This document shows, one piece after another, positions 19,207-63,835 of a stretch of DNA of 64,000 bases. Numbering within the stretch: the stretch's first letter is position 1; every line of letters starts with the position of its first letter. Both the position numbers and the translations under genes were made by a program. The stretch lies in assembly GCA_038496445.1 (NCBI GenBank), contig JALMLS010000299.1:62001-126000 (forward strand). Reading direction: 5' to 3'. This stretch comes from Trichosphaerium sp. ATCC 40318. Taxonomy: Eukaryota > Protista > Tubulinea. The notes beneath the pieces were generated by a model. It searched no databases, was not told the DNA's origin, and was given only the letters and a program-made list of their open reading frames with translations.

Positions 19207-19323
19207 AATTAAAACTAACACTAACAATTTTGTGATAAGGTACTTGCAACCCAAGGCCTTTCACAACAATAAACGATTTTTGATTTATACTCGCTGGTGG
19301 TAATACTTTCGTGTGTACGCGCA

Positions 19324-19345
19324 CTGGTTTGTATTGTATTGTATT
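19324..19345 (-). repeat. Target-site duplication copy (CTGGTTTG) and 3' pentanucleotide tail (AATAC)3
   Basis: Plus strand reads ctggttt-gtatt-gtatt-gtatt; the same ctggtttg recurs at 28777-28784. Confidence 0.75.
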
Positions 19346-19406
19346 AATGGGTAAAGGTCAAAATAATTCCAAAAGAGCGAAAAAATGCAAATATTTTATT
19401 ACGATT

Positions 19407-20112
19407 TTACAGCGGTTGATTGATTAAAATGCGATCGAATTCAGAGATTACTGGTGGAAAGACCCTCGCTTTACCGATACCGTTAAGGTACCTTGTAATG
19501 TGATTTTTGTACGATGTCTTGAACTTAGGTAGTATAAAGTGCTTACACTCGCTCAATACTGACCACTCTGGTAATGGTCCCCTTAGCGCTACTGCCTTCA
19601 TAGCGTTATCTATGATGTCTACAGAACAGCCCTTTACGAAACTAAGATCTCTTTTGAAAGAGGTTCCATTTGCGCAGTTGTATCCTTTACTTAGTTCCCA
19701 AGACACCAAGAACTCGTAATGGCCTACTGCTAATTTACCCAATCTCTCGCTGAAATAAAAGTAAATTATGTGAAATAAAGGAGCATGGGTTTGTTTACTT
19801 GAAGTTCGGTGGTATTGGTTTCACAGCCACCAACTTAATACTGCCTCTGGAGTGGCTAACGTAACCAGACAATCTGGTGACAACAGTTAAGAAACCCATT
19901 TCATCGCCAAAGTAACCAGAGCGCCCAATGCGATATTTGCCCTTCTCGTGGAGTGACTCGATAACGTACAAAACGCCGTTGTCCCATGAACCATCGGTGA
20001 TTGAAATAAAGAAGTCTTTGAAGAATATTGCAGTAGGACAGGCTTCTCGCCTAAGCATCTTAATGCATTCATCTTCGCTATCTCTCCAATGTGGTATTTT
20101 GCGTTCAGCCAT
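19407..20112 (-). CDS. LINE ORF3: two-exon 218-aa protein with T5orf172/MUG113-like (GIY-YIG) motif; exons 20112-19799 and 19749-19407
   Basis: A 49-nt GTAAAC...TTTCAG intron joins two ORF-track fragments in frame (PPNFN-ERLGKL); GVLYVIES...KYRIGRS...TRLSGY pattern; AATAAA just after the stop. Confidence 0.7.
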
Positions 20113-20388
20113 CACTTGCGGTTTCACTGGTTTGATATGTTAAAAATAATTTAATCAAGTTTCGCTTGATTGATGTTGTAAAGGTCAGATCAAGTCTTAT
20201 CTTGTGCTGTCCTCTTCTCCGAAGGCCGGTTGTCGGCTCTCACGTAAGTCACGGCGGCGATAGCCGCCGTGTATCTTCTCCGAGTTCTCAACAGAAAACT
20301 TTAACATGGAAGAAGATAGTTCGGATAATAACCCATCGTTACCCTTCAGAGCTCGCCTAGGCGGCTCCAGGGCGTTATATTAATTGTT

Positions 20389-23300
20389 TTACGTGATAGG
20401 GCTACCGGCAAATCGCCGGTAGATATCTTCCATCTCTGGGCATTCGACAAATTCAGTGTTGTAGTCTATCCACCATTGTTCGTGTAATTTGCATCTTTTT
20501 TGGTAAATACCGTGTATCATCTTGGCTAAGGCGAGATGTACTTTTTTTAGAGACTTAGTGATTGCTACTGAGTCGCAGCCTTGATCTTTCAGGCTGTTCA
20601 CCAGTTTTTTAGGAATGTAAGCTTTAGCAACCAGCTCCTTGGTTTCGAGACTAGGTGCCGTGTTGCGTCTAAAGGAGCAGATGTCATTCGCAGATGGCCA
20701 GAATCGTTTGTATTTGGCTCGTGGGAGGTGTTCTTTCATGGCTAGCTTTATTTCTTTAGCTGTATCTTGTCGATAACTTTCATATTTAGGGCAATCGGCG
20801 ATCACGTGCAGATTGGATTCTATTTCATTACAAAACATACAAACGTTGTCAGAGTATTTATCTTTATTAACTCCAGGCCAGTTTTGTATTGCCCTTTTAT
20901 GCATGATTTCACGTGTGCATAGTTTGTCGTTTCTCGCTTTGAATAAAGTGTTATTAATTTTTTTCATTGTGTAATCTGGTTTGCCGAAGTTAATTGCCGA
21001 GACGCTCATGTCGGCTTTATCCATGATTGGTCTGCGCTCGATGAGCTCTTTGTTCGCCTTTTCTTTAAAAGTTTGAGCTATGTATTTCCGTATGTTTCCT
21101 TCGATAGGTTTAAGTTTTTCGTCGTATAGTGTATAGTCTAGCATTCCGTTGAGTATTTTACCTTCAACTTCGTCAGCTTCTCTACCCAGATTGGCTAGTT
21201 TATCGGCTTCTTCGTTGCCTTCAAGTATCCACTCTATGTTTCTACCAAAGGTGTTTTTGAGTGTATTTACCTCCGCCATGAGTCTTCCCATGCGGTTAGG
21301 TTCCTTTTTGTATGCCTTGATTTTTTTATTGAAGTGGCTAGGTACTTTGTGTATAATGCAGTCACCGTTATTGTCCGCTCTATCTTTAAGAGCGTCGCGG
21401 AGTTCTTTAATGGCTATCGCATTGGGCGAGAAAGGGGAAACCGAGTCACTACATGCCATCTTAATGACATAAGTGGAATCCGTAAATAAGTACATAGGTT
21501 GATCTATTGGGACCACCTTAACAGCTACTATGGCTGCTTCTAATTCAGCTGCATCGATGTCTTGTTTGGTGACTGCTCTACATGCAAGGTTGTTAAGATT
21601 ATCTTCACCGAAGTAGACTCCAACCCCAGCGACATTACCATTTTTCTTTTGAATACGAGAGCCGTCTGTCCAGACGCAAACAAAGTCTTTATGCCAGTGC
21701 CAATCGTCGTCTACGCTACTGTTGATGGTGGATATGCTGTTATTGGAGAGAGTGGCCTTATTGAGGGCACATTTTATTGCCTTATTATTACCTTCAGTTA
21801 TGACTTTGGCTAGTGCGTGATAGGTATATTCGGTAACTGTTTTGCCAAATAACTTACATATTTCATTTCTGTCTACTAGTCTACCGTTACGTATCACATT
21901 GACTTTAGTGATGTCATCAAGAAGGCCTAACGATGTGAGTGTGTCACATTGTGTTTCGTTAAGCATAATGGGTAGTGGTGGTGTTTCAGTGACACTAGCC
22001 ACGCACGTCATGTTCATTTTTAGTAGCATTTTCTTATACATAGTAAGTCTGTCGTCATTAATATTTATTTTTATTTTCTTGGCATGATGAGTTTGTGCTG
22101 TTTGCCTAAGTCCTTTTCTGTTGATGGTTGGAAGGTAAATGTTGTCCGTCAGTCTTTGTTTAGTGGTGACTTGTGGGAGCGAGCCATTTTCTGCGTTAAG
22201 TGCAAATTTATATGTGTTGGCGACGAGTGCTATTTGGTTTGCAAGCATCGGTGGAACTACTTCCTTGCCATCCAGTTCGCGGCTAGCCCAGAGTTGGCAG
22301 TGTTTGGATCTAGAGGTCATAGGGATGGCTCTGAATAGCATCTGAACTACCGCTTTTTTGAGTTTTTTCATGATGTCTAGTGGAAAAGAGTAGAAATTCA
22401 TATGATATTTTAGAGCTTCGTTTAGTACTCTATTAATGATGGTTATTTTGCAGTCATATGGAACTGCTCTGCCTGATATGAGGTTTAATCTATATATGTA
22501 TGCAGACTTAACAGCTTGAGCGTCACGATTCCAGTCCAGTTTTATGTTGATGAAAATGCCTAAGTATTTGTAGGATTTACCAATTTCGATGCCTGGAAAC
22601 TCGACCGAGATATTATTTCTTATAAGTACCAGAGGGTCTGCTTCCTCTGAACTCATATATTTTGTTTTAGCTTGGTTGACTTTCCATCCATTGTAATCGC
22701 AAAAGTTAAGGAAGTGGTTCATGGCGTTGGTCAGATTTTCTTTGTTCTCTGCTATGAGTACAATGTCATCGCAGTATGCTAAGACTGAGATTTGTATGTT
22801 GGAGTTATTAGCGAACTGATAGCCTTGAATATTATTCGAGATGTATTTAATTATGGGGTTGAGGCATAGGACGAAGAGCATGGGTGATAATATATCTCCT
22901 TGTTTAACGCCATTGGTGATGTCAAATTGTTCTGAGAGACCGTCGATAGTGAGGATTTTGCCGCTACAGCCATTGTATAGGGCTGAGATAGCTTCAATCA
23001 TGATATTTGGAAACTTGTAGTACTTAAGCGTTTTGATCATAGACCAGTGTTCAACTGAGTCGAACGCTTTACTTATGTCAATGAATAACATTGCCAATTT
23101 TTTCTTTTCGGCAAATTGTCTCCTGTCTTCAATGACGTTTATGAGCGTAGTGATGTGTCCTACCGTGGATCGCTTTGGTCTGAATCCATTCTGTTCGTTG
23201 GCGAGGATGTTATTTCCATCCACAAACTCTAAGATTCTGTTATATAATAGTCTGGTGTATATTTTGTATTGAACTGCTAGGAGTGCTATAGGTCGGTAAT

Positions 23301-25479
23301 TTTTTGGATCTGTAGGCGAGGATCCTCTTTTATGTATAAGATATAAGTAAGAGTTTTTCCATGTGTCTGGCATGTAACCTTTTGTATAGCAGCCGTTAAA
23401 AAGGTTGAGCATAATATTAAGATATTCGTCATTGAGTTTTTTATATACCTCTGCAGGTATTCTGTCTTCGCCAGATTGTTTCCAGCTTTTGGTGGCTTCT
23501 ATTGCCTCTTTTAGTTCTTCCATTGTGAAGGTTTTGGTATCCATTTGAACTTTGGAAGTATCTATTTCTTCATTGAGCCAGTAAGGGTCTCCGGATGGTA
23601 CTGTGTCTACTTTGTTAAGTATTTTGTCCCAGGCTTTAACGAAAAGAGACATTTTTTCTTTATGATTGTTGGTCACAACACCTGAATCAGGATCTTTCAG
23701 AGGGCTATTAACCGCCGTACCTTTGCGTTGTAATAGGTTGTCGAAAAAGGCTTTAGGATTGTCATGGAACTTATCAATCAAACCGTTTATTTTCTCTTTT
23801 ATAGAATCCGCTTTGTATGCTGTTGCTCTTTGGTCTCGTTTTATTTTAATGTGTTTGATTATTAGTTTAATGTACTCTCCTAGGTCATCTCCATTACCTT
23901 TCTCTTTAATATTTTTTGTGATTTTGTCTTCGTCATGTATAACCAGTTTCTTACATTCTTTACGGATATTTATTAAAACGTTGAAGCATGATTTAACTTC
24001 CGAGGTTGACATGTCAATAGGATCTTTGGATTTGTTGATTAGTTTTTGTACTCTATGTTTAAGATTACCCCATTTTCTAAGTTCATGATCGTTGGATGTT
24101 CTGGTTTTGCGAAATTCTCTGTGTTTGGTGCCTACTAAGTCTTTACAGTTATCGTAGATTTCTTCTGTAAGGTTTTGCGCTAGATTGTCTAGACTGAGAA
24201 GTGAATCACTGTTCAGCCATCTGTTAAAGTTGCGATGTAGTTTATCGCTGATCATAGTATCATTGATAAGGCCTAATTTGTCACTTCTAGTATTAAGACT
24301 GTCTTTTGGTTGTTCTAGTTTGGTGCCTTCATCCGTATTTCCCTTCCACCACCATTCGAACTCAATAAGTATCGGATAATGGTCACTATCTGTGAACGGA
24401 TCATCATCAATAGAGAAGTTCCACACTCTAAGTTCGTCTGACTTTTTAACAAGGAAGAAGTCTAGAAGTGCCTTGCAGCTGAAGATTCTTTCCTTGTCTA
24501 TATATTTCATACTTACTCTGGTGAACATTTCTTTATTTGGGTATAGTATTCTATGAGCTGCTACTAAATCTCTCTCTTGCATGAGGTCTGAAAGCGCTTC
24601 TGATTTATGATCTGAGAATTGCATATTGTGGTTATCTGCGTACCATCTATCAGTGTCTTTATTAAGTACTGAGTTGAAATCGCCACCGATGATTACGTGT
24701 TTTTTCGTACTGTTGAATTTATTTAAATATACATTGATTATATTATTAACTTTACAGAAAAATTGATCTTGTTCGTTAGAACCACTGCAAGGGGAGTAGA
24801 TGTTGGTGATTATGATGGTCGTGTTCTCATCTCCAATTGCTATAAGTAAGATTTTTCTGGACGTGTCGTAGTATACTTCTTTGACTTTGTCTACTAATTC
24901 TTTACGGACGAAAATACTGATGCCTTCTGATTTTTTGAATACTTTGAGTTTGTCTTTTTTTATGCGTAACTTGTCAATGGCTGTCCTTTTTTCTTCTTCA
25001 GTAAGGTCTCTTTTGAGTTTGGCTATTTGTCCACGGAACCATTTTTCTCTCTTATCTTCTGTTGTGAGTAAATTGGTGTACATTTTGTAATTGTCGAGGA
25101 GCGCCGAATCAGTGTCGTGTTTTAATTCAGCTTTATTACACATCATTTCTTGTACTAGGATTACGTCCGCTTGCATTTTCCTAGCTTGTAACATGATTAA
25201 TCCTGAGCTGATAAACCATTTACCTCTGCAGTTGATTGAACAAACTTTTATACAACTCTTATCGCCGCTAATGTTAATGTGATCTGTGTTGTCCGCCCTA
25301 ATTGCGAACTCCAATTGTTTATTGGTAATTTCGTTTTTTGAAAAACCTCCGTTATTGTATCTTTTTGCTATATTACGAATTTCTACTTCTCTGTGTTCGG
25401 TACTGCGGATGCTCGGCCTCGTTCCAGAATGCCCTTTATTTCTGGAGCGAAGACCATAATTGTGTTTGCTACTTAACAT
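20389..25479 (-). CDS. LINE ORF2: apurinic endonuclease + reverse transcriptase + RNase H + CCHC zinc finger, intronless
   Basis: APE: SINCRG, ILVQE, NIYSP, GGDFN, SDHYPI. RT: NYRPIALL, QNGFR, DISKAFDSV, GVKQGDILSP, YCDD, YKYLG. RNase H: WTDGS, AAELEAA, TDSTY, KVPSH, GNEEADKLA. CMFC-x7-H-x4-C knuckle. Confidence 0.97.
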   Translation of the reverse strand: MLSSKHNYGLRSRNKGHSGTRPSIRSTEHREVEIRNIAKRYNNGGFSKNEITNKQLEFAIRADNTDHINISGDKSCIKVCSINCRGKWFISSGLIMLQARKMQADVILVQEMMCNKAELKHDTDSALLDNYKMYTNLLTTEDKREKWFRGQIAKLKRDLTEEEKRTAIDKLRIKKDKLKVFKKSEGISIFVRKELVDKVKEVYYDTSRKILLIAIGDENTTIIITNIYSPCSGSNEQDQFFCKVNNIINVYLNKFNSTKKHVIIGGDFNSVLNKDTDRWYADNHNMQFSDHKSEALSDLMQERDLVAAHRILYPNKEMFTRVSMKYIDKERIFSCKALLDFFLVKKSDELRVWNFSIDDDPFTDSDHYPILIEFEWWWKGNTDEGTKLEQPKDSLNTRSDKLGLINDTMISDKLHRNFNRWLNSDSLLSLDNLAQNLTEEIYDNCKDLVGTKHREFRKTRTSNDHELRKWGNLKHRVQKLINKSKDPIDMSTSEVKSCFNVLINIRKECKKLVIHDEDKITKNIKEKGNGDDLGEYIKLIIKHIKIKRDQRATAYKADSIKEKINGLIDKFHDNPKAFFDNLLQRKGTAVNSPLKDPDSGVVTNNHKEKMSLFVKAWDKILNKVDTVPSGDPYWLNEEIDTSKVQMDTKTFTMEELKEAIEATKSWKQSGEDRIPAEVYKKLNDEYLNIMLNLFNGCYTKGYMPDTWKNSYLYLIHKRGSSPTDPKNYRPIALLAVQYKIYTRLLYNRILEFVDGNNILANEQNGFRPKRSTVGHITTLINVIEDRRQFAEKKKLAMLFIDISKAFDSVEHWSMIKTLKYYKFPNIMIEAISALYNGCSGKILTIDGLSEQFDITNGVKQGDILSPMLFVLCLNPIIKYISNNIQGYQFANNSNIQISVLAYCDDIVLIAENKENLTNAMNHFLNFCDYNGWKVNQAKTKYMSSEEADPLVLIRNNISVEFPGIEIGKSYKYLGIFINIKLDWNRDAQAVKSAYIYRLNLISGRAVPYDCKITIINRVLNEALKYHMNFYSFPLDIMKKLKKAVVQMLFRAIPMTSRSKHCQLWASRELDGKEVVPPMLANQIALVANTYKFALNAENGSLPQVTTKQRLTDNIYLPTINRKGLRQTAQTHHAKKIKININDDRLTMYKKMLLKMNMTCVASVTETPPLPIMLNETQCDTLTSLGLLDDITKVNVIRNGRLVDRNEICKLFGKTVTEYTYHALAKVITEGNNKAIKCALNKATLSNNSISTINSSVDDDWHWHKDFVCVWTDGSRIQKKNGNVAGVGVYFGEDNLNNLACRAVTKQDIDAAELEAAIVAVKVVPIDQPMYLFTDSTYVIKMACSDSVSPFSPNAIAIKELRDALKDRADNNGDCIIHKVPSHFNKKIKAYKKEPNRMGRLMAEVNTLKNTFGRNIEWILEGNEEADKLANLGREADEVEGKILNGMLDYTLYDEKLKPIEGNIRKYIAQTFKEKANKELIERRPIMDKADMSVSAINFGKPDYTMKKINNTLFKARNDKLCTREIMHKRAIQNWPGVNKDKYSDNVCMFCNEIESNLHVIADCPKYESYRQDTAKEIKLAMKEHLPRAKYKRFWPSANDICSFRRNTAPSLETKELVAKAYIPKKLVNSLKDQGCDSVAITKSLKKVHLALAKMIHGIYQKRCKLHEQWWIDYNTEFVECPEMEDIYRRFAGSPIT

Positions 25480-28400
25480 ATTTGTATAATTTATTATTGC
25501 GGTTCAAGATAGGGCTCTCGTTTACAAGGGCTGTAAACTTACGAGCGTGTGTGTGATAGTAGTTATGATTTCGGTTTATACGCATCAAATACTTTGTACT
25601 ATGAGGATTTTGTGTATATCCAGCGATGATGCAGCATATTTTATGCGTTATGTAAAGAAAAGGCGCAAAGTTGTAACAAATAGGTTCCCAAATGGTATAG
25701 TTATCTTTGTTACGCGTAGAGAAACATATATGTGTGTTTGTTACGCGAAGGGAAAAGGAAGAGATTCTTGGATGTTTAAAAGGTTTGTTTAGTTTCATAC
25801 CAAGTATCAACGAGCGTATACTTACTAGAAAGAAGGGAAATTTGTGTGGAGAAAGTTTTCGAAGCGAGTTATAGTCATTTAATTGTTTCAACGCAGATGA
25901 ACAGTAAAAGGTATGTGGTAAAAGAATTACTAAGGAACCAAGTATTTGAGGAGCTTTAAATTTATTTTTTTTTAGAACACAGCAGAACCTTGAATACCAA
26001 TCGAGTTTGAAGACTGTAAGTAATTTATACGTCTTGTTTTGGAGCTGATAATTTGTCCAGTTTTTCTTGAGTGGCCTTGCTGAGGCCGATGTCACATTCA
26101 ACGTCTCCCAGATAGTCATCAAGAGAAGGCTTAGCGGTGATGGATTGCTTACCGGCAGTGGCTCTTGCTCTGGAGCGCGATCTAGACGATCTGGTGGCGA
26201 CTCTACAAATTCTGCCCGATCCGAGTCCAGTATTTGGGTCGATGTTTTCCTTCTCGATGATGTTTTTAATGTCTGACATTTCTTCGTCAGAGTTGGCTGT
26301 GTCAGACCAGGAGATTTCATCATCTCCGGTAACATCAATGTAAGTGGATTTTTTCTTCTCCTTCTTTTCTTTGACGGCATTAGAGGTGTTGTTTGTCGCA
26401 TTGGATGAGTTTTCAATATCAAGAGAGCCACCGTTTTTGAGAATTTCTCTAGTGACAAGTTCACGTGTATCATTGATACTAAATTAATAATGTAAGAATA
26501 CTGTGTAATATTATGTAAGTGAAAGATAAAAAATACTTGCGCTTTAAGGAGTGAGACTACGTTTCTGGATAGGCCTTGGATCATTCCTTTTACATACACA
26601 ATTTCGTTATGCATTGTGAGAAGGGCTGGGTTGTTAGGTTTTACCGTTTTCCCGTTGTTGGTGCATCTACCTTCCTTGTAGTTGAATCCATTCATTGGTT
26701 CCATAGGGAGTCTATCAAGGAGGGTTCTATTGTAATAGATTTCAGGCGAGGTGAGGTAAGTGATTTCGTTTTCGAAGGCGCTTTTGGTAAGCGTAACATA
26801 GACGCATCCGTCTATGGCGTCATCTTTTCGAGGATCCATGGCAGGAGCGAGATCTTTGGTGTCAAGCCTGTCTTTGAAGAGCTTGTGCATGTATTTAAGA
26901 CCGGTGGCAATAGGCAAACCACGAGGCATCTTAGGTACAATCAAGGTGTATTTGTGATGTGGTTTGTATGGCGTTTGGAGAAACATTGTCCAATTATCTT
27001 CGCCGAACATGTTAGTCATTCTGATGGCGTCGTTTCGAGCGTGAGCGTCAACAAAAACTGCACTACCGTATTGGTGAGTTTTGTTCCAAGAGGCTGCCAA
27101 CATTACTGAGTTGTTACGGTTTTTGCGGCGATTGGCTTTACGATTATGGGCACCAACTATGTTTGTGATAGATGGGTCGATGAGTTTGCCTATTTTTATG
27201 TGAGAATATGATATTGTATAATTGAGAATTAACGATGAATGTGTTTTAATGTGAGAGAGAAAACAGATCCAAGAGTGGGTTTTGTTGGTGTCGTGATTCA
27301 TTTTCTTTGAATAAAAAGGAGTGTTTTGGGTTTGTTTTGGGATTGAGAAGAAGAAACAAAGAAGAAATAGATGTGTATGCGTGGTAGTTTTGTTATAGTT
27401 TTTGGTAGTATTGTGAGCGATAACGATACCTCTAGTGATGGAAAGCAGCGTGGCAACTGCGCAATCAGTGGTTTTGGAGTAGAACACATGTGTTTTGGGG
27501 CGTCTTTCAAGGCGAACCGCCAGTTCGCGACAGGTAGAAGCATCTTGGAGGAATACGTAGACCATCGGCATAAAATCAGGACCCATTTTGAACTTGTTGA
27601 TTTCGATCCCCTCAGCAAGATCTTCAACCGATACCGATATACCTCTAGAGGTGACGGTATGATCGTTGACCACCACTATTAGGAGATATCCATCCCGAGT
27701 CTCAAAAGGTTCATCAAGAAAACTAATAAAGTGAGAATTATGTGGGAAGTGTCTAAAAATGAGATTCTTTTGATAATATAATAGTGAGGAATTAAAGTCG
27801 AACTGTTTGCATTCTTGAGAAACATCTGGGAGGAAGGAGGACCCGTTATCATCGTCATCGTATCGATCATCATCTCGACGACGACGTTTGTTAGGGCCTT
27901 TGCCTTTACGGTTGATTCTGGAGCTATCCAGATGAGGGATAGTTAACACTAGGCGTTGTGACATGTTTGATAGTTGTTTAATAATGGTTTTAGGGTGGGA
28001 GAGGATTAGACCTTCAAAGTTTTTTATTTCCTTTTTGATCGATTTGGAAAAAAGTTTTCTTATCTCAGTATTGTGGGTAGGTTGGTTCGCAAAACTTTTT
28101 CTGGTACTTTCTCTTGCGATATGAGACTTGGGTACTTTTGTTATTTCCCCGTATTTTTTAAAGTATTTTTTACTAATGTATTTAAATGTGAATTGGAAGT
28201 CATGTGTAAATTTTTTCGATTTTTTGTCGTTCCCTATTACGGTGGAATTGTTGAGGAGATATTGTGGAGAAATCCTCTTAAATTTGGCGTAAACGCCAAG
28301 TTTTGTTTTAAGTTTTAGTCGTGGAATTAAATTTAGGTCTAACTGTTGTGTTTTACGGCCTATATATGTGATGTGGAAGGAAAGAGGATGGTCTATTGTG

Positions 28401-28600
28401 TTATTTGGCTTTTTAAAGTAGTAGCCATTACTAAATGTTTTCCCGCCAATGTTCTTGAACATCGATAAACTCGGTCCTTGCATTGTCTGTTTGTCACATT
28501 CAGCTTTAGCTGACGTAGATAAAGTGAACTTAAGAATTGCAGCAGTTACTCCCTTCTGGGCAGATAACCTCCCATCGTAATGGGTGTATGTGTTTGTCAT
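25469..28600 (-). CDS. Stop-free long ORF of the unspliced LINE RNA (1043 aa from the first in-frame ATG), overlapping the ORF2 start by 11 nt
   Basis: ORF track 25469..28666 (GTG start); first in-frame ATG at 28600; ends AAA TAT GTT AAG TAG, which contains the ORF2 ATG in the +1 frame. Confidence 0.6.
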   Translation of the reverse strand: MTNTYTHYDGRLSAQKGVTAAILKFTLSTSAKAECDKQTMQGPSLSMFKNIGGKTFSNGYYFKKPNNTIDHPLSFHITYIGRKTQQLDLNLIPRLKLKTKLGVYAKFKRISPQYLLNNSTVIGNDKKSKKFTHDFQFTFKYISKKYFKKYGEITKVPKSHIARESTRKSFANQPTHNTEIRKLFSKSIKKEIKNFEGLILSHPKTIIKQLSNMSQRLVLTIPHLDSSRINRKGKGPNKRRRRDDDRYDDDDNGSSFLPDVSQECKQFDFNSSLLYYQKNLIFRHFPHNSHFISFLDEPFETRDGYLLIVVVNDHTVTSRGISVSVEDLAEGIEINKFKMGPDFMPMVYVFLQDASTCRELAVRLERRPKTHVFYSKTTDCAVATLLSITRGIVIAHNTTKNYNKTTTHTHLFLLCFFFSIPKQTQNTPFYSKKMNHDTNKTHSWICFLSHIKTHSSLILNYTISYSHIKIGKLIDPSITNIVGAHNRKANRRKNRNNSVMLAASWNKTHQYGSAVFVDAHARNDAIRMTNMFGEDNWTMFLQTPYKPHHKYTLIVPKMPRGLPIATGLKYMHKLFKDRLDTKDLAPAMDPRKDDAIDGCVYVTLTKSAFENEITYLTSPEIYYNRTLLDRLPMEPMNGFNYKEGRCTNNGKTVKPNNPALLTMHNEIVYVKGMIQGLSRNVVSLLKAQVFFIFHLHNITQYSYIINLVSMIHVNLSLEKFSKTVALLILKTHPMRQTTPLMPSKKRRRRKNPLTLMLPEMMKSPGLTQPTLTKKCQTLKTSSRRKTSTQILDSDRAEFVESPPDRLDRAPEQEPLPVSNPSPLSLLLMTIWETLNVTSASARPLKKNWTNYQLQNKTYKLLTVFKLDWYSRFCCVLKKNKFKAPQILGSLVILLPHTFYCSSALKQLNDYNSLRKLSPHKFPFFLVSIRSLILGMKLNKPFKHPRISSFSLRVTNTHICFSTRNKDNYTIWEPICYNFAPFLYITHKICCIIAGYTQNPHSTKYLMRINRNHNYYHTHARKFTALVNESPILNRNNKLYKYVK
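26025..27964 (-). CDS. LINE ORF1, spliced form (~520-545 aa), RRM-like domains plus coiled coil and charged tail
   Basis: Removing introns 27429-27190 (GT-AG) and 26540-26479 (GC-AG) gives a continuous protein-like sequence (ITRG-KLIDPS; SLLKA-INDTRELVTRE). RNP-like motifs YGSAVFVDAHARNDAI, YTLIVPKMP, GCVYVTL. AATAAA ~60 nt after the stop. Start codon inferred. Confidence 0.65.
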
Positions 28601-28776
28601 ACTCTGGCAAAGTTTTTTAACTATTGAATACGATAAACCATAAGGTTTATGGAGCGAACGGTACACATTTAGTGTCAGTGTGACGTAGCTAGATCTATCT
28701 TGTTATCGATAGGGGCTATGTAGAAAAGAACAAACAATTTCAGACGAGCTTTCACACTCGAATTTTGCCGTTTTTT

Positions 28777-28784
28777 CTGGTTTG
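28777..28784. repeat. Second copy of the target-site duplication CTGGTTTG
   Basis: Identical to 19324-19331; lies ~180 nt upstream of the element's first long ORF. Confidence 0.7.
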
Positions 28785-28848: not shown

Positions 28849-31295
28849 ATGTCAAGAGCACCTCGCCTTTTTGATGATGATGACGTAGCTAAAACAGCTG
28901 AAGGGTTGAATGTCAATACTACATTTTCAGAAAAGTACTTTCGCAACAAAATGCAGAAAGAAATATCTGAGAGTACGTCACTACGCGTTTATATAACTCC
29001 TAACAAGCTTTTATAGAAAAAGACCGATTGTTGCATACAATAGAGCGTAATCCCGTTGATTCGGACTCTGGTTCTGAATCAGACTCTGCTGAAGGCGTAG
29101 ACGCTACTTTCTTAGAGCATCTGCCTATTCTTGCGAAAAAACCAGTATCTATCAAAAAAACGATATTTTCAGTACCTCAAAAGCCAAAAAAAAAGGTAAC
29201 AGTTTAATGTAAGACATAATCAAAGTAAATTCTGTAAATTAGGCAGTTGAGGCGCCATACACCGTTAAAGAATTCATCAGAGAGACTGCATTCGACGCAG
29301 ACGAAAAAGTACCAGTAGCAAAGGTTTGACACTTTTTTTGTTTTTGAACGCGACGGAAACGGGTACTAAACGCTTACTAGAAATCTAATCAAGCCACAAT
29401 CGAAGACGAATTAATAGAACTAAAGCACGTCAAATTACAACCGCTTTATTGCCATTTTTATTTTTGTTGTTAAAAAGTCCTTTAGGGAAGGTTTTCAAAC
29501 TGTTATAGATGAACTGGAAGCAGATGAAAGTGACTTTCTTGTTCCTGCAGAAGAAGATGAAGAAAATAGTGATGATGAGCGGGAAGCAGATCAAATGTAT
29601 AAAGATGTTGTCAAGTCAATCTCTAAATCCGTAAGTGTCAAAAAAATCCATCACATTTTTTTTTTCAGTATTAATTGTTTCACGTGTAGGGAAACAAGAA
29701 AAAAGTAAAAGATGTCGAAAGTACGACTCTTTCTCTTATTTATTTATTTGTTTGATCTTGCGTGGGTATTAACAAAAATCAGGTTATTGGTCTGCAGAAG
29801 GAGCAAGCAAACAAGATACATTTTTACGTCAGTACTTTAAAGGTCAAGGGTGGCTTTATGATGATATAAGTATAAAAGAGATTAAAGAAACAGATAAACA
29901 AGGTGATAATAAACCAGCTACAACAGTAGTAGATGATCCTTTCGAATTTAAGCATCCGTACGTTATGTATCTTTTCTTTATCTGTTTCTATGAAATCTTT
30001 CAGCATTAAGTAGTACTTGTGATTAACTTATCAATTAGAAATGCAAAAGATTATGACAGCTACCATGGGCGAACAGGTGGATCTGTTTCGATGAGGAGGT
30101 ACAGCACAACTAAACTCAAAAACATCTTCAAAGAATTTTTTTATTTTTAGTGGCCTTGGCTTAAATTCTCCCGTGTCAAGTGCTCCTTGATACCATTTTA
30201 ATTCAATACTTATTTTTACAATTTAAACTCCCTAAGCTTACGAAATTCAGGACAAAACATAAACGTGCAGAGAAAAGAAAACGACAAAAAGAGAATAAAG
30301 CAAAAAGAAAAAAAGCATTCATAGAACAAAAAAAACAATTAATGAACCTACGTAAAATGCAAATTCTAGATCGCCTGGCTAGAATAAAGCGTGATGCTAA
30401 CCTCGATGATGGTACACATAAACAAACAAACCCACATCTTTAGTACACCAGTAAATACTCACAGTAAATTATAGACGCAGTTAGACAGCTTGATATACAA
30501 GCTGAGTTCAATCCTGACACTCACGACGAACTTATGGAAAAAATATTTGAACAAGGAATGAAAGAAGAAGAACTTGAGTCTGATGGTGAGGATCCTAAAA
30601 AACCAGAGTTTGTTGATGATTATGATGCACTACCGTTACTCTCAAAGACTAATGCTTTGATTAAACGTAAACGTGAAATGGATATTTGTCCTGATTTGGA
30701 AAAAGATCTCCAAGATTATTATAGCTTAGATTTTGAAGATGTTGTACGTAATAACTGCTATACAATTTTACATTATTTCACAAATATATCCTTTGAAAAA
30801 ATTATGTTCAACAAGCACAAGCGGTCGAGAAAAATTTTTGGGCTTTTTTTTCTGAAACTTTCACTTGAGGACGTTGCTTTTTAACCGTTTCGTTGTTGAT
30901 GTGTTGACCATTGATTTCTTTCTTTTTAGATTGGAGATGACCTTTATTGTCGTTTTAAATACAGAGAAGTTGAAGCAAATGATTATGGCATTAATCTGTA
31001 TGAGATGCTAATGAATGATCCTAAAGACTTGAATCAGATTGTTGGTAGAAAAGTTTTAGCTCCTTACAGAGAAGATCAAGGAAGAGTTAGACCAGATATT
31101 ATTCGTAATAAAATGGCAGCAGTAGAGACATTTCAGAGGTTTCCTGATGGGCCTAGCGCAAAAGTAGACAAAGAAAGGCTTATGTCTGAAACAGCGCTTA
31201 AAGGAACAAAAAGAAAGATGGTAGGCGCTGTAGCAAACCGTAAACAGAAGAGAAAACGAAGAAAGAAAAGTAAAGGAACACGTAGTTACCAATAA
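28849..31295 (+). CDS. KRI1: KRI1 homologue (40S ribosome biogenesis)
   Basis: KRKRQKENKAKRKKA...KKQLMNLRKMQILDRL; YYSLDFEDV-IGDDLYCRFKYREVEANDYGI...DLNQIVGRKVLAPYRED. Confidence 0.85.
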
Positions 31296-33813: not shown

Positions 33814-36460
33814 ATGCATCAGCTCCACTCTGCATTACTGATCATACTTTGTAGTGCAATTTATACAGCCCTTTGTGGATTTTCACAAGATGTACGGCCG
33901 TATCAAGTAGTTTTGAGCTTACGTATCTATGAGTAGGTTATTCTTAATGAAATAGGCCTTGACAACGGAGAAGGGCCCGAATACGTAGAGCTTAAGAATC
34001 TTAGAGCAAGCGAAAGCACAATTACTGGCTGGACAGTAAAAATAATTAATCATGGCTGTTCTGGAACTATTACGCACCAATACACGTTCCCAGACTCAAC
34101 AGGTACGTTTTGTTTAATTTCACAAAAACACGTCTAATTCCTATGTAGTTGTTCCAGCTGGAGGCCATATCTTATATGTAGACAACGAGAATCCCAACTG
34201 TATCCCATCGGTTGGATGCAATGTAATCACTGCATCGTCAAATATAGTTAATTCTTTGACATCAGAAGACGATGTAGAAATTGTGTTGCTAGACGATACA
34301 GACACTTGCATGGACTACGTGGCAATAGGCGCTACTAATGACAATCAAGGTAAGCACAATATAGTAAACACTTTCTGTGTAACCTTTGTCGCTAGGGGGA
34401 TGCTTGTGGAATACCAACTTATTACAAGCAAGCGACTACGGCATTATCCAAAGAGCTACTAGTATTCCTTCCGCAAATTGCTACGATTGGGTCGCAGCTT
34501 CAACCACAACCCTTTGTATGGATGGAGTAGGGTCACCACTTATGGATTGTAACGGAACAATCAATGTGTGCCCTCCTACTGCACCTCCTACGACCTTACC
34601 TCCAACGACGCTCCCTCCAACAACACTACCTCCAACGACGCTTCCTCCAACAACACTACCTCCAACAACGCTCCCTCCAACAACGCTCCCTCCAACAACA
34701 CTACCTCCAACAACACTACCTCCAACGACGCTTCCTCCAACAACGCTACCTCCAACAACACTACCTCCAACAACACTACCTCCAACTACTGAAGCGCCAA
34801 GTACTGAAGCGCCAAGTACTGAAGCACCATCTACTGAAGCACCAACTACTGAAGCACCAAGTACTGAAGCGCCAAGTACTGAAGCACCATCTACTGAAGC
34901 ACCAACTACTGAAGCGCCAAGTACTGAAGCGCCAAGTACTGAAGCACCATCTACTGAAGCACCAAGTACTGAAGCACCAAGTACTGAAGCACCATCTACT
35001 GAAGCACCAACTACTGAAGCGCCAAGTACTGAAGCACCATCTACTGAAGCACCAACTACTGAAGCGCCAAGTACTGAAGCACCATCTACTGAAGCACCAA
35101 CTACTGAAGCGCCAACTACTGAAGCACCAAGTACTGAAGAACCAAGTACCGAAGCGCCAAGTACTGAAGCGCCAAGTACTGAAGCGCCAAGTACTGAAGC
35201 GCCAAGTACTGAAGCTCCAAGTACTGGAGAACCAACTACTGAAGCACCATCTGACGGAACAAAAGCTCCCACCACTGTTGCACCATCCAGAGTTGAGACG
35301 CCTACTACTAAAGCGCCAACTGCTGCTCCACCAACGTTTCCAATTACTATTTTGACATCAGCGCCTACAACTAGACCTCCAACCACAGAAGCACCTACTG
35401 ATAGAATTGAGCCTACTACTGTAGTACCAACACCATTCGTATTTCCAAAAGTAAGATACTATTCAAAACAAGATTAAAGGCTAACGTGTATCTTAGATAG
35501 AACCACGTCTTGACTGCGTAAGAGATAATCTAGATGGAACATTCACTGCGTTCCTTGGTTGGAATCGCGATGTTCCTCCAGAAACTCTAACAATCCCTGT
35601 TGGAGACAACAACTTCGTTTCTCCTGAACCAGCATCAGGTTTTGGAGATCAACCTACTGAATTTGGTGGTACTACTCAATTCTATCCAGTAGTATCATAC
35701 GCACTGATATTCAGTGGTGAAACAACAACATGGACCCTAGGCGTACGCATTTCTTTTTTAGAATATTCACTTTGTTTTGATGTATAACTTTACTTTAGCT
35801 CGGTGTTGTAAGCTTCAGTGGAGACGAGACTGATCTACGTTGTAAAGACGATGCAATTGGTATTAATTGGGTTATTCCAAGTCCATTCCCTACAAGTGAT
35901 ACCTTGTTGGATCAAGTTATAGCAATAATTGTTAAAAACATTAACTTTGCTGGAACTTCAGCAACATACACTCAAAGCGCTGGAACAACTGCAAGTCAAG
36001 CAACACTACTCGAAATGACAATCACATCTAGTGGTACGTTATTGCAAACACTTTCTTTTTTTTGTGTCTATGTACTCACTCTTTTCTACGCAGAATCTGG
36101 TATCGCTGAAGCTGTAGGAGCGTTCATGAGCGATGAAGCTCGTGTTGAACAAACGAGAGTGGAAATAGCAGCTTTATTTTCTACAACTGTTGACGTACGC
36201 ATTGATATTGTTTTTCCGTTGTTTAGACGCTAACATGTTTTTTTAGACTATTCCAATTGTAGCAAAGCCTACAACCGTTAAGCCTAGTACAGCACGTACA
36301 AATACTGGTTTAACTTCATCTAGCAGTAAAAAGGGATGGACTACTGCACTTTTCGGTACGCTTGCGACTATTGTCTGAAAAAGTGCTTCTTGGGAGCTTT
36401 CAGGTTTACTAATGTTGGATAGGTGCTTTGGTTTTGTTTCTTGCTATCGTAACAATGTAA
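33814..36460 (+). CDS. Cell-surface mucin-like protein: signal peptide, lamin-tail-like domain, Pro/Thr repeats, bacterial-type beta module, hydrophobic C-terminus
   Basis: MHQLHSALLIILCSAI signal; VILNEI...PEYVELKN...ITGWTV (LTD pattern); PPTTL/PSTEA repeats; terminal ALVLFLAIVTM. Confidence 0.8.
34585..35250 (+). repeat. Coding 15-bp tandem repeats: ~14x PPTTL then ~30x P(S/T)TEA
   Basis: cctccaacaacacta and ccaagtactgaagcg units with synonymous variation. Confidence 0.95.
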
Positions 36461-62255: not shown

Positions 62256-63835
62256 TTAGTAACGTTGTTGGTAATTACCCTAGAGTACTCAAGTGTTAAC
62301 AACCAGCTAATGTCATAAACTGTTTTATTATGCTTGACGTACGTATTGTTGTTGTTGATAACCTCCAGGTTGTCCTTGCTGAGGAGGCGGTTGACCTTGA
62401 CCGTATCCATAAGGTTGCATTTGTCCTTGTTGTTGAGGAGGTTGACCTTATCAAATCAGTCAGAACTTCTTAATTTTAAATCAATGTCTTACCGTAACCT
62501 TGTTGCGGAGGATATTGCTGCCTGTTTGTGTTCGCAACATTCGCTACAGAAAAGAGTGAACCAAAGCTACTTTGCACACCAACACGTTTTTTTTTTCCTT
62601 ATCATACCTTGATAACCTTGTGTATTTAACTGTCCTGCATTATACTGCTGTGGCGGTTGTTGGTAGCCTCCTAGAAAAGAATTCTTTAAGAAAATCAAGC
62701 TTCCGTTAGTTCAGTTTTACTTACCTTGTGGTGGTCCGTTGTATCCCTGTTGTGGTGGTCTATTATAACCTTGTTGAGGGCTTCTATATCCCCCCGGTGG
62801 GCCTTGGTTGAAACCACCCTGTTGTGGCGGTGGTCTAAAGTTTCCTTGTCCTGGTGGAGGCCCTTGGTGTTGACCTGGAGGAGGTCGGTAGTTTTGTTGA
62901 CCTGGTGGAGGACCTTGGTGTTGACGTTGGCCGGGAGGAGGTCCAAAATTACCTCCATGCCCTTGAGGAGGTCCAAAGTTTCCTTGGCCTAGAGGTGGGC
63001 CAAAATTGCCTTGTTGTCGTTGAGGTGGGAAGCTACCTTGACGATTTGGTGCTTGATAATTTTGGCCAGGAGGTTGGCGTTGACCAGGTGGCCCTTGTCC
63101 TGGAGGTGCTCCTTGATGTTGATGACCTGGTGGAGGCCCTTGGTGTTGGCCGGGAGGAGGTCGGAAATTTTGGTGGCCTGGCGGAGGTCCTTGTCCTGGC
63201 GGAGGTCTTTGTCCTGGCGGAGGTCCTTGGAGTTGGCGTTGACCAGGTGGTCCTTGTCCCGGCGGAGGTCCTTGCCGGTGGCCAGGTGGTGGCTGGGAGC
63301 CTTGTGGAGGTGGTCTAAAGTTTTGCTGGTTTGGAGGTGGTCCATTATCTGTGTAATGCGTAAGATTTAAAAAAAGTGTATAAATGGTTAGCTTACTTTG
63401 TTGTGGTGGTTGATAACCAGGCGGATAACCTTCTGGCACATTTGATGCACCTTTAGGTGGATTTTGTCCAGGAGGAGGTGCATTACCCTGTCCTGGTGGA
63501 GGTTCTTGTCCTGGCGGATGTCCTTGTCCTGGCGGAGGTCCTTGACCTTGTGGAGGAGCGCCTTGTGGTGGTTCTTGTCCTTGAGGATTATTCTGTTTTG
63601 GAGGTTCTTGACCTTTCGGAGGTGGGTTACCACCGCTTGGAGGCTTTCCTTCTAGTTGTTTTTGTGGTGCTGCCTTACCAGGCTCACGTCCTCCCTTCTT
63701 TGGTGCTGATTTCTGTGGACCACGTTGCGCAGGACGTTGTGCAGGACGTTGTGAAGGACGGCTTGATTGTTTCTTTGATGCTGCGGATCTTTTTGGTGGA
63801 TTCTTTGTTTTCATATCTTCTGGTGTTATATCCAC
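62256..63835 (-). CDS. 3' part of a Pro/Gly/Gln-rich low-complexity protein (continues upstream)
   Basis: QGPPPGQ / NFRPPP repeats over several exons; acceptor TTTTATAG at ~63835 indicates further upstream exons. Confidence 0.75.

Follow-up and report, generated by a model that had tools for sequence, protein, structure and literature searches.

A host-like orphan open reading frame, possibly a captured passenger, at the 3' end of a divergent RNase H-bearing APE-type LINE

Background

LINE 3' transduction and chimeric retrocopies formed by template switching have been described for mammalian L1. In bdelloid rotifers, retroelements of the LTR and Penelope-like (Athena/Terminon) types have captured third open reading frames (ORF3s) for a GDSL esterase, a DEDDy exonuclease and env-like products; these ORF3s are family-specific, lie downstream of pol, are missing from early-branching relatives and encode enzymatic domains that can be recognised and that retain their catalytic residues (PMC5408684). 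At the locus described here, by comparison with the bdelloid ORF3s, the carrier is an APE LINE and the ORF3 has no recognisable domain. A first-pass annotation had assigned this ORF3 to the T5orf172 branch of the GIY-YIG nucleases, and a full-text search of the literature found no paper connecting T5orf172 with LINEs. If ORF3 were a nuclease gene conserved in an APE LINE, the LINE architecture would be new, but the evidence presented below does not support this.

The LINE and its genomic surroundings

The window, that is the whole 64-kb stretch of DNA that was analysed, is eukaryotic, with a G+C content of ~38%, tightly packed genes and apparently very short introns, and a bacterial promoter and terminator scan was for that reason set aside as irrelevant. 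The host genes in the window are multi-exon and include a PIG-S exon, a PFF1-like exon and an NmrA/epimerase-like gene, the last of which lies on the plus strand, ends at 19207 and is convergent with ORF3. Another plus-strand gene (28851-29700, ATG at 28851) has an acidic N-terminus of the MSRAPRLFDDDD type and several putative introns of ~38-47 nt. As its ATG lies ~70 nt from the 5' side of the LINE, the element occupies a very short intergenic or promoter space. Elsewhere in the window, a 372-codon open frame on the minus strand (62720-63835), without a Pfam family, has an extremely high content of Pro, Gln and Gly, dozens of repeats of the GPPPGQ type and a C/A-rich coding strand whose T content is only 0.14. 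A Pro-rich ORF on the plus strand (34386-35474) gave a sub-threshold match to Extensin_1 (64.7 bits against a cutoff of 105); the long overlapping frames found there on both strands suggest a repeat-driven artefact or a low-complexity gene.

A single LINE is carried by the minus strand of the window. Its parts are as follows.

25469-28666, minus strand: ORF1-like open frame of 1065 codons, first ATG near 28600
20389-25479, minus strand: ORF2 of 1696 aa, with APE endonuclease, reverse transcriptase and RNase H
20135-20388, minus strand: hairpin-rich LINE 3'UTR, 254 nt between the ORF2 stop and copy 2 of a terminal 10-mer described below

An APE endonuclease and a reverse transcriptase are found together in ORF2, here also with RNase H, which identifies the element as an APE-type non-LTR retrotransposon. 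The three domains were matched by the Pfam families Exo_endo_phos (PF03372, 2e-9), RVT_1 (PF00078, 3e-38) and RNase_H (PF00075, 4.5e-10), and the C-terminus of ORF2 is a Cys/His knuckle. The closest database protein shares only 28% identity with ORF2. The LINE is a very divergent, apparently intact, RNase H-bearing element of the APE type. Its ORF1-like frame overlaps the start of ORF2 and has no Pfam family. ORF1 is very long in relatives as well (1585 aa at 150-4907 in L002 and 760 aa at 293-2575 in L016), and among the ORF1s of the window LINE, L002 and L016 neither a recognisable domain nor any mutual similarity was detected. Parts of the ORF1-like frame of the window look low-complexity.

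The region directly 3' of ORF2 is strongly structured: the segment 20113-20430 folds with a minimum free energy of -107.8 kcal/mol (z = -7.2), a value equalled by none of 100 shuffles. Two relatives, L001 and L016, have readable 3' ends. L001 ends ~170-190 nt after ORF2 in a (TG)9 tail and L016 ~100-130 nt after ORF2 in an A-rich repeat of the (ATAAA) type, and their 3'UTRs, of ~100-190 nt, are hairpin-rich too. The GC hairpins directly 3' of ORF2 in the window LINE, L001 and L016 suggest a conserved structure for recognition by the reverse transcriptase. An Rfam scan of the whole window found nothing. A 9-bp GC hairpin was noted at 20250-20271 within the LINE 3'UTR, and an AAACCA[C/G]TG-like string after the tail of L016 has no matching 5' copy and was taken as a coincidence.

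Gene structure and composition of ORF3

Two open frames lie 3' of ORF2, at 19795-20127 and 19407-19742. The first-pass annotation had read them as a two-exon ORF of 218 aa, and this model holds: exons of 314 and 343 nt give 657 nt, or 219 codons, and the string that had been quoted from the protein, GVLYVIES-x5-KYRIGRS-x14-RLSGY, is located in exon 1. The model comprises the following features.

19799-20112, minus strand: ORF3 exon 1, 314 nt, ATG at 20112, with the GVLYVIES...KYRIGRS...RLSGY string
19750-19798, minus strand: putative ORF3 intron, 49 nt, GTAAAC...TATTTCAG
19407-19749, minus strand: ORF3 exon 2, 343 nt including the TAA stop at 19407-19409
19395-19400, minus strand: AATAAA polyadenylation-type signal, 6 nt 3' of the ORF3 stop

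The two frames, with 105 and 113 open codons, are joined in phase across the putative intron by a split codon (AA+C), and the donor of this intron contains the stop codon of the exon-1 frame. Of the 25 frame-compatible GT..AG pairs, the one used in the model fits the consensus far better than any other. The exon-2 frame is open already from 19820 and overlaps the exon-1 frame by 23 nt, and a single frameshifted ORF without an intron is a possible alternative reading of the two frames. Given the stop-codon frequency of the window, the chance that 105 codons remain open is ~0.0026, and ORF3 looks like a genuine gene.

For the analysis of codon use, a host codon table was built from host exons and the six frames of each ORF3 exon were scored with it. 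In both exons the proper frame scored best of the six (+0.095 and +0.075 bits/codon), and both values fall inside the range spanned by host exons (-0.03 to +0.23 bits/codon). The G content of ORF3 is 0.23-0.24, compared to a maximum of 0.222 among 324-nt windows of ORF1/ORF2, and its A content is 0.28-0.32, compared to a mean of 0.386 in ORF2. The two exons have host-versus-LINE codon log-ratios of +0.02 and +0.06, compared to a mean of -0.155 (sd 0.12) in LINE windows, only 6-8% of which attain the values of the ORF3 exons. The 49 nt of the ORF3 intron are compatible with the size of the putative host introns, ~38-47 nt. In base composition, codon use and intron size, ORF3 resembles host genes and not ORF1/ORF2. 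An ordinary host gene would match it equally in composition, intron size and AATAAA signal.

Distribution of ORF3

No ORF3-like sequence was detected by tblastn in the related loci L001, L002 and L016-L018. The third genes called after ORF2 in the metagenomic relatives L016 (6835-7392) and L018 (6927-8594) are frameshifted ORF2 C-termini, and these displaced segments comprise the RNase H and the Cys/His-knuckle region. By its composition, its apparent intron and its absence from the nearest relatives, ORF3 appears not to be an ancestral LINE gene.

Relatives of ORF3 were searched for exon by exon. Word searches found nothing with exon 1 or with exon 2; these searches cover proteins of 0.55-1.75 times the query length, and full-length relatives of 218 aa fall outside the range of exon 1. 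A phmmer search with exon 1, unrestricted in length, against 1.84 billion representative proteins returned two matches at E ~6e-5, one of which (P0122, a bacterial surface protein) is an artefact that stems from the C-terminal strand recurring in its fasciclin domains, while the other (P0121) is a protein of 5319 aa with no aligned stretch. With the ORF3 exons, tblastn against phages gave nothing below E=5, and no relatives came from scans of viral and metagenome contigs in which the exons and also ORF2 served as queries. No second copy was found within the 64-kb window or in any collection searched. By these searches ORF3 appears to be a lineage-restricted orphan with no detectable relatives. 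Since the LINE lineage is poorly sampled, the missing relatives are weaker evidence than they would be in a well-sampled clade.

Duplicated terminal boxes around ORF3

Several short repeats lie at candidate ends of the LINE and around the segment that contains ORF3.

28777-28784, minus strand: CAAACCAG, copy 1, candidate 5' target-site duplication (TSD), upstream of the ORF1-like frame
20178-20187, minus strand: first TGACCTTTAC box, in the LINE 3'UTR, 43 nt upstream of copy 2
20125-20134, minus strand: CAAACCAGTG, copy 2, where the LINE 3'UTR ends, separated by 12 nt from the ORF3 ATG
19351-19360, minus strand: second TGACCTTTAC box, 19 nt upstream of copy 3
19329-19345, minus strand: (TACAA)3.4 simple-repeat tail, detected by TRF
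19322-19331, minus strand: CAAACCAGTG, copy 3, abutting and overlapping the tail

The exact 10-mer CAAACCAGTG occurs twice in the 64 kb, at the end of the LINE 3'UTR and on the side of the tail, and both occurrences are preceded by the exact 10-mer TGACCTTTAC. The (TACAA)3 array is the sole perfect pentamer repeat of at least three copies in the window. The 80-nt segments ending before copies 2 and 3 have two collinear, non-overlapping exact 10-mers in common, and such a pair was obtained in 13 of 200000 shuffles and in 9 of 300000 random window pairs (~3-7e-5 for two given segments), these statistics being post hoc. The local alignment of the ends (Y versus X) was equalled in 50 of 1000 shuffles, which is marginal, and that of copy 1 was reached by 99 of 1000 shuffles for the copy-2 region and by 338 of 1000 for the copy-3 region, which is marginal to weak. 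The ORF3 module thus delimited measures ~0.8 kb (about 19332-20124): it begins right after the terminal 10-mer of the LINE, has its own AATAAA and terminates in the second TGACCTTTAC ... CAAACCAGTG set and the (TACAA)3 tail.

The sole TSD candidate is the 8-mer CAAACCAG, present at 28777-28784 and at 19324-19331, with a third relevant copy at 20127-20134. As this 8-mer occurs seven times in the window, three of the copies being relevant, the TSD boundary is ambiguous, and the LINE could on this sequence evidence end at 20135 or at 19332. Nothing convincing was found near either candidate 3' end when longer TSDs (at least 12 nt, with 1-3 mismatches) were sought, and there is no clear simple-repeat tail in the LINE 3'UTR before copy 2. 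Of the earlier proposal that the ORF lies inside a boundary formed by a TSD and a tail, the tail is present as the pentamer array, and the TSD is ambiguous, given the three relevant copies of the 8-mer.

Origin of ORF3

It is quite possible that ORF3 is a host-like passenger mobilised or captured by the LINE at its 3' end, and this is the explanation that, from a single copy, we tentatively favour. The cargo status already proposed for ORF3 is, in its capture part, compatible with the host-like composition and intron, with the absence from related elements and with an end that resembles the LINE 3' end and is followed by a tail, and it is not supported in its functional part, that of a nuclease cargo, for which no family match was obtained. 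In the most likely history, a host mRNA or pre-mRNA would have been copied together with the LINE 3' end by the reverse-transcription machinery of the LINE. This might have given rise to a composite element, via template switching or duplication of the 3' end, or, equally, to a separate chimeric retrocopy or non-autonomous unit that inserted at the LINE's own target site. In the latter case, the perfect 10-bp repeat would be the TSD of that unit and the 8-bp repeat the TSD of the LINE. A sequence that passed through RNA would not be expected to keep an intron, except where an unspliced template was copied or where a frameshift has been mistaken for the 'intron'. From the observed positions, repeats, composition and domain content we infer the order of events, the target specificity, the splicing and the capture mechanism proposed here, as would be the case for any function of the protein. 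Whichever route was taken, the best reading of ORF3 is that of a recent passenger and not of an ancestral gene of the LINE.

Alternatively, ORF3 may be a resident host gene, the LINE (~20135-28776) having inserted 22 nt upstream of its ATG. The insertion site would be a short divergent promoter that ORF3 had in common with the plus-strand gene starting at 28851, and the TSD of the LINE would be CAAACCAG at 28777-28784 and 20127-20134. A resident gene would account for the host-like composition and codon use, the host-sized intron, the presence of its own AATAAA and the tight packing of the region, in which the NmrA/epimerase-like gene ends at 19207. It would also be in line with the length of the 3' end, as the relatives end 100-190 nt after ORF2 and copy 2 is found here at 254 nt, and with the likeness of copies 1 and 2 over ~20 nt (16/20 matches). 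However, it leaves unexplained why the copy-2 10-mer recurs at 19322-19331, beside the only pentamer microsatellite of the window, and why each of the two copies has TGACCTTTAC, likewise an exact 10-mer, before it, with a joint chance of ~3-7e-5; moreover, the LINE end that it proposes has no simple-repeat tail. We consider a resident gene somewhat unlikely.

A further reading is that the LINE lineage has an intron-containing orphan 3' module or partner gene, possibly with a GIY-YIG fold diverged past detection, which bears the 3'-terminal boxes of the LINE. The LINE machinery would copy it, whether as part of the element or as a companion that is coding but non-autonomous and shares the CAAACCAG(TG) target. 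This reading is unlikely.

ORF3 might also be a fragment in decay and without function. It would then be a retrocopy with a frameshift, or else a partial duplicate, since diverged, of the RNase H of the LINE, and its frames would still be open because it is young, or by chance. The 23-nt overlap of the frames would allow a single indel to explain both of them without an intron, and the lack of homologues anywhere searched is as expected of a non-gene. Residues 30-101 of exon 1 align to the N-terminal half of the ORF2 RNase H with a pairwise E of 0.002, and exon 1 (19798-20112) and the segment 21508-21690, both on the minus strand, have the similar blocks KDF..TDGS, G.G.YFG and VAVK..P. However, the similarity has an E of 4.5 in a window-wide search, a profile built from 14 related LINE RNase H domains gives exon 1 a score of -1.4 bits and, of a domain whose catalytic positions are Asp/Glu/Asp, aligns only 'TDGS', and Pfam RNase_H does not match. 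On the RNase H profile and the window-wide E-value, exon 1 was rejected as a diverged copy of the ORF2 RNase H. The host-like coding statistics in both frames, the good intron signals and the 219 open codons, which are unlikely for junk, also speak against a decaying fragment of either kind, which is quite improbable as the origin of ORF3.

The GIY-YIG family assignment

The family to which ORF3 had been assigned by eye, T5orf172/MUG113, would make it functional cargo that serves the LINE as a second nuclease or by binding DNA. To each ORF3 exon Pfam returned no family at E<=10, including PF10544, PF13455 and PF01541, and no match was found for either exon in PHROGs, NCBIfam and PADLOC; sequence matches in the PDB (E 0.075 and 1.2) were due to chance. 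As a positive control, phage T5 'YomD' was matched by the same tool to PF10544 at 2.7e-8 and to PF13455 (MUG113) at 7.9e-9.

A T5orf172 core profile of 94 positions was made from phage T5 'YomD' and 12 diverse phage homologues and was used with the HMMER filters off. Exon-1 residues 45-65, with the LYV...x...YRIG string, align to profile positions 2-20 with 1.6-2.3 bits and a single-comparison E of 0.013-0.02, and hhalign aligns the same 19 columns with P 0.0057 and a probability of 6.5%. By eye, an Arg-Leu, a hydrophobic strand, a His and a Gly-Thr-Ser-Phe might follow collinearly across both exons, and searches made exon by exon would be weakened by an intron that splits the domain. Among 450 stop-to-stop ORFs of at least 50 codons taken from the window and scored against the profile, the exon-1 ORF ranks 11th, with ten others outscoring it. 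For exon 2, the best hhalign match covers 5 columns (P 0.35). The second half of the domain has an Arg helix, a His and a Glu-containing Thr-Glu-Phe/Trp-Phe box in 13/13 phage domains; with HMMER at maximum sensitivity and hhalign, no alignment of exon 1 extends past position 20 and none in exon 2 is meaningful, and no profile aligns a counterpart of the Glu of this box in the ORF3 exons. Single-sequence AlphaFold2 models of the separate exons have pLDDT values of 37.2 (exon 1) and 39.2 (exon 2), at which fold matches would be meaningless.

As judged from its sequence, exon 1 resembles T5orf172 in a short, hairpin-like string that does not rise above the noise. The T5orf172/MUG113 identity is not supported, with no library match and a profile score within the noise of the window, and neither is the role of a second nuclease. 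With a profile score of ~2 bits that ten other window ORFs beat, no aligned Glu box, no phage or viral relatives found and uninformative exon models, a functional GIY-YIG cargo is highly improbable.

Comparison with known systems

The string in exon 1, Gly-x-Leu-Tyr-Val ... Tyr-Arg-Ile-Gly-x-Ser, has a spacing similar to that of the first beta-hairpin of T5orf172 (PF10544) and MUG113 (PF13455) proteins; unlike in these families, there is no significant profile match, the remaining domain is unaligned and the Glu box was not found.

The element itself is like the RNase H-bearing APE LINEs (I/Tad1/LOA-type architecture) in that ORF1 is followed by an ORF2 with APE, RT and RNase H domains and a Cys/His knuckle, and in that it has a structured 3'UTR and a simple-repeat tail. 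It differs from them by the 28% identity of its ORF2 to the nearest protein, by an unusually long ORF1, of 1065 codons, with no known domain and by the ~0.8 kb of coding sequence located between the 3'UTR and the tail.

As in 3' transductions and template-switch chimeras, non-LINE sequence with an AATAAA lies between the LINE 3' end and a terminal tail or target-type repeat, and the carried segment is host-like in composition and absent from related elements. In contrast to these, boxes resembling the LINE 3' end flank the ORF3 segment on both sides, the tail is a pentamer repeat and not poly(A), and ORF3 retains an apparent intron. Being a single copy, the locus is a lead and not a discovery. 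A divergent LINE with a host-like orphan gene at its 3' end, between duplicated terminal boxes, is nevertheless a clean-looking example, and it could show how such LINEs acquire or move intron-bearing coding sequences and whether they target short sites. Compared to the systems described so far, the window LINE is best seen as a new, very divergent RNase H-bearing APE LINE with what may well be a captured passenger, and not as a new LINE architecture.
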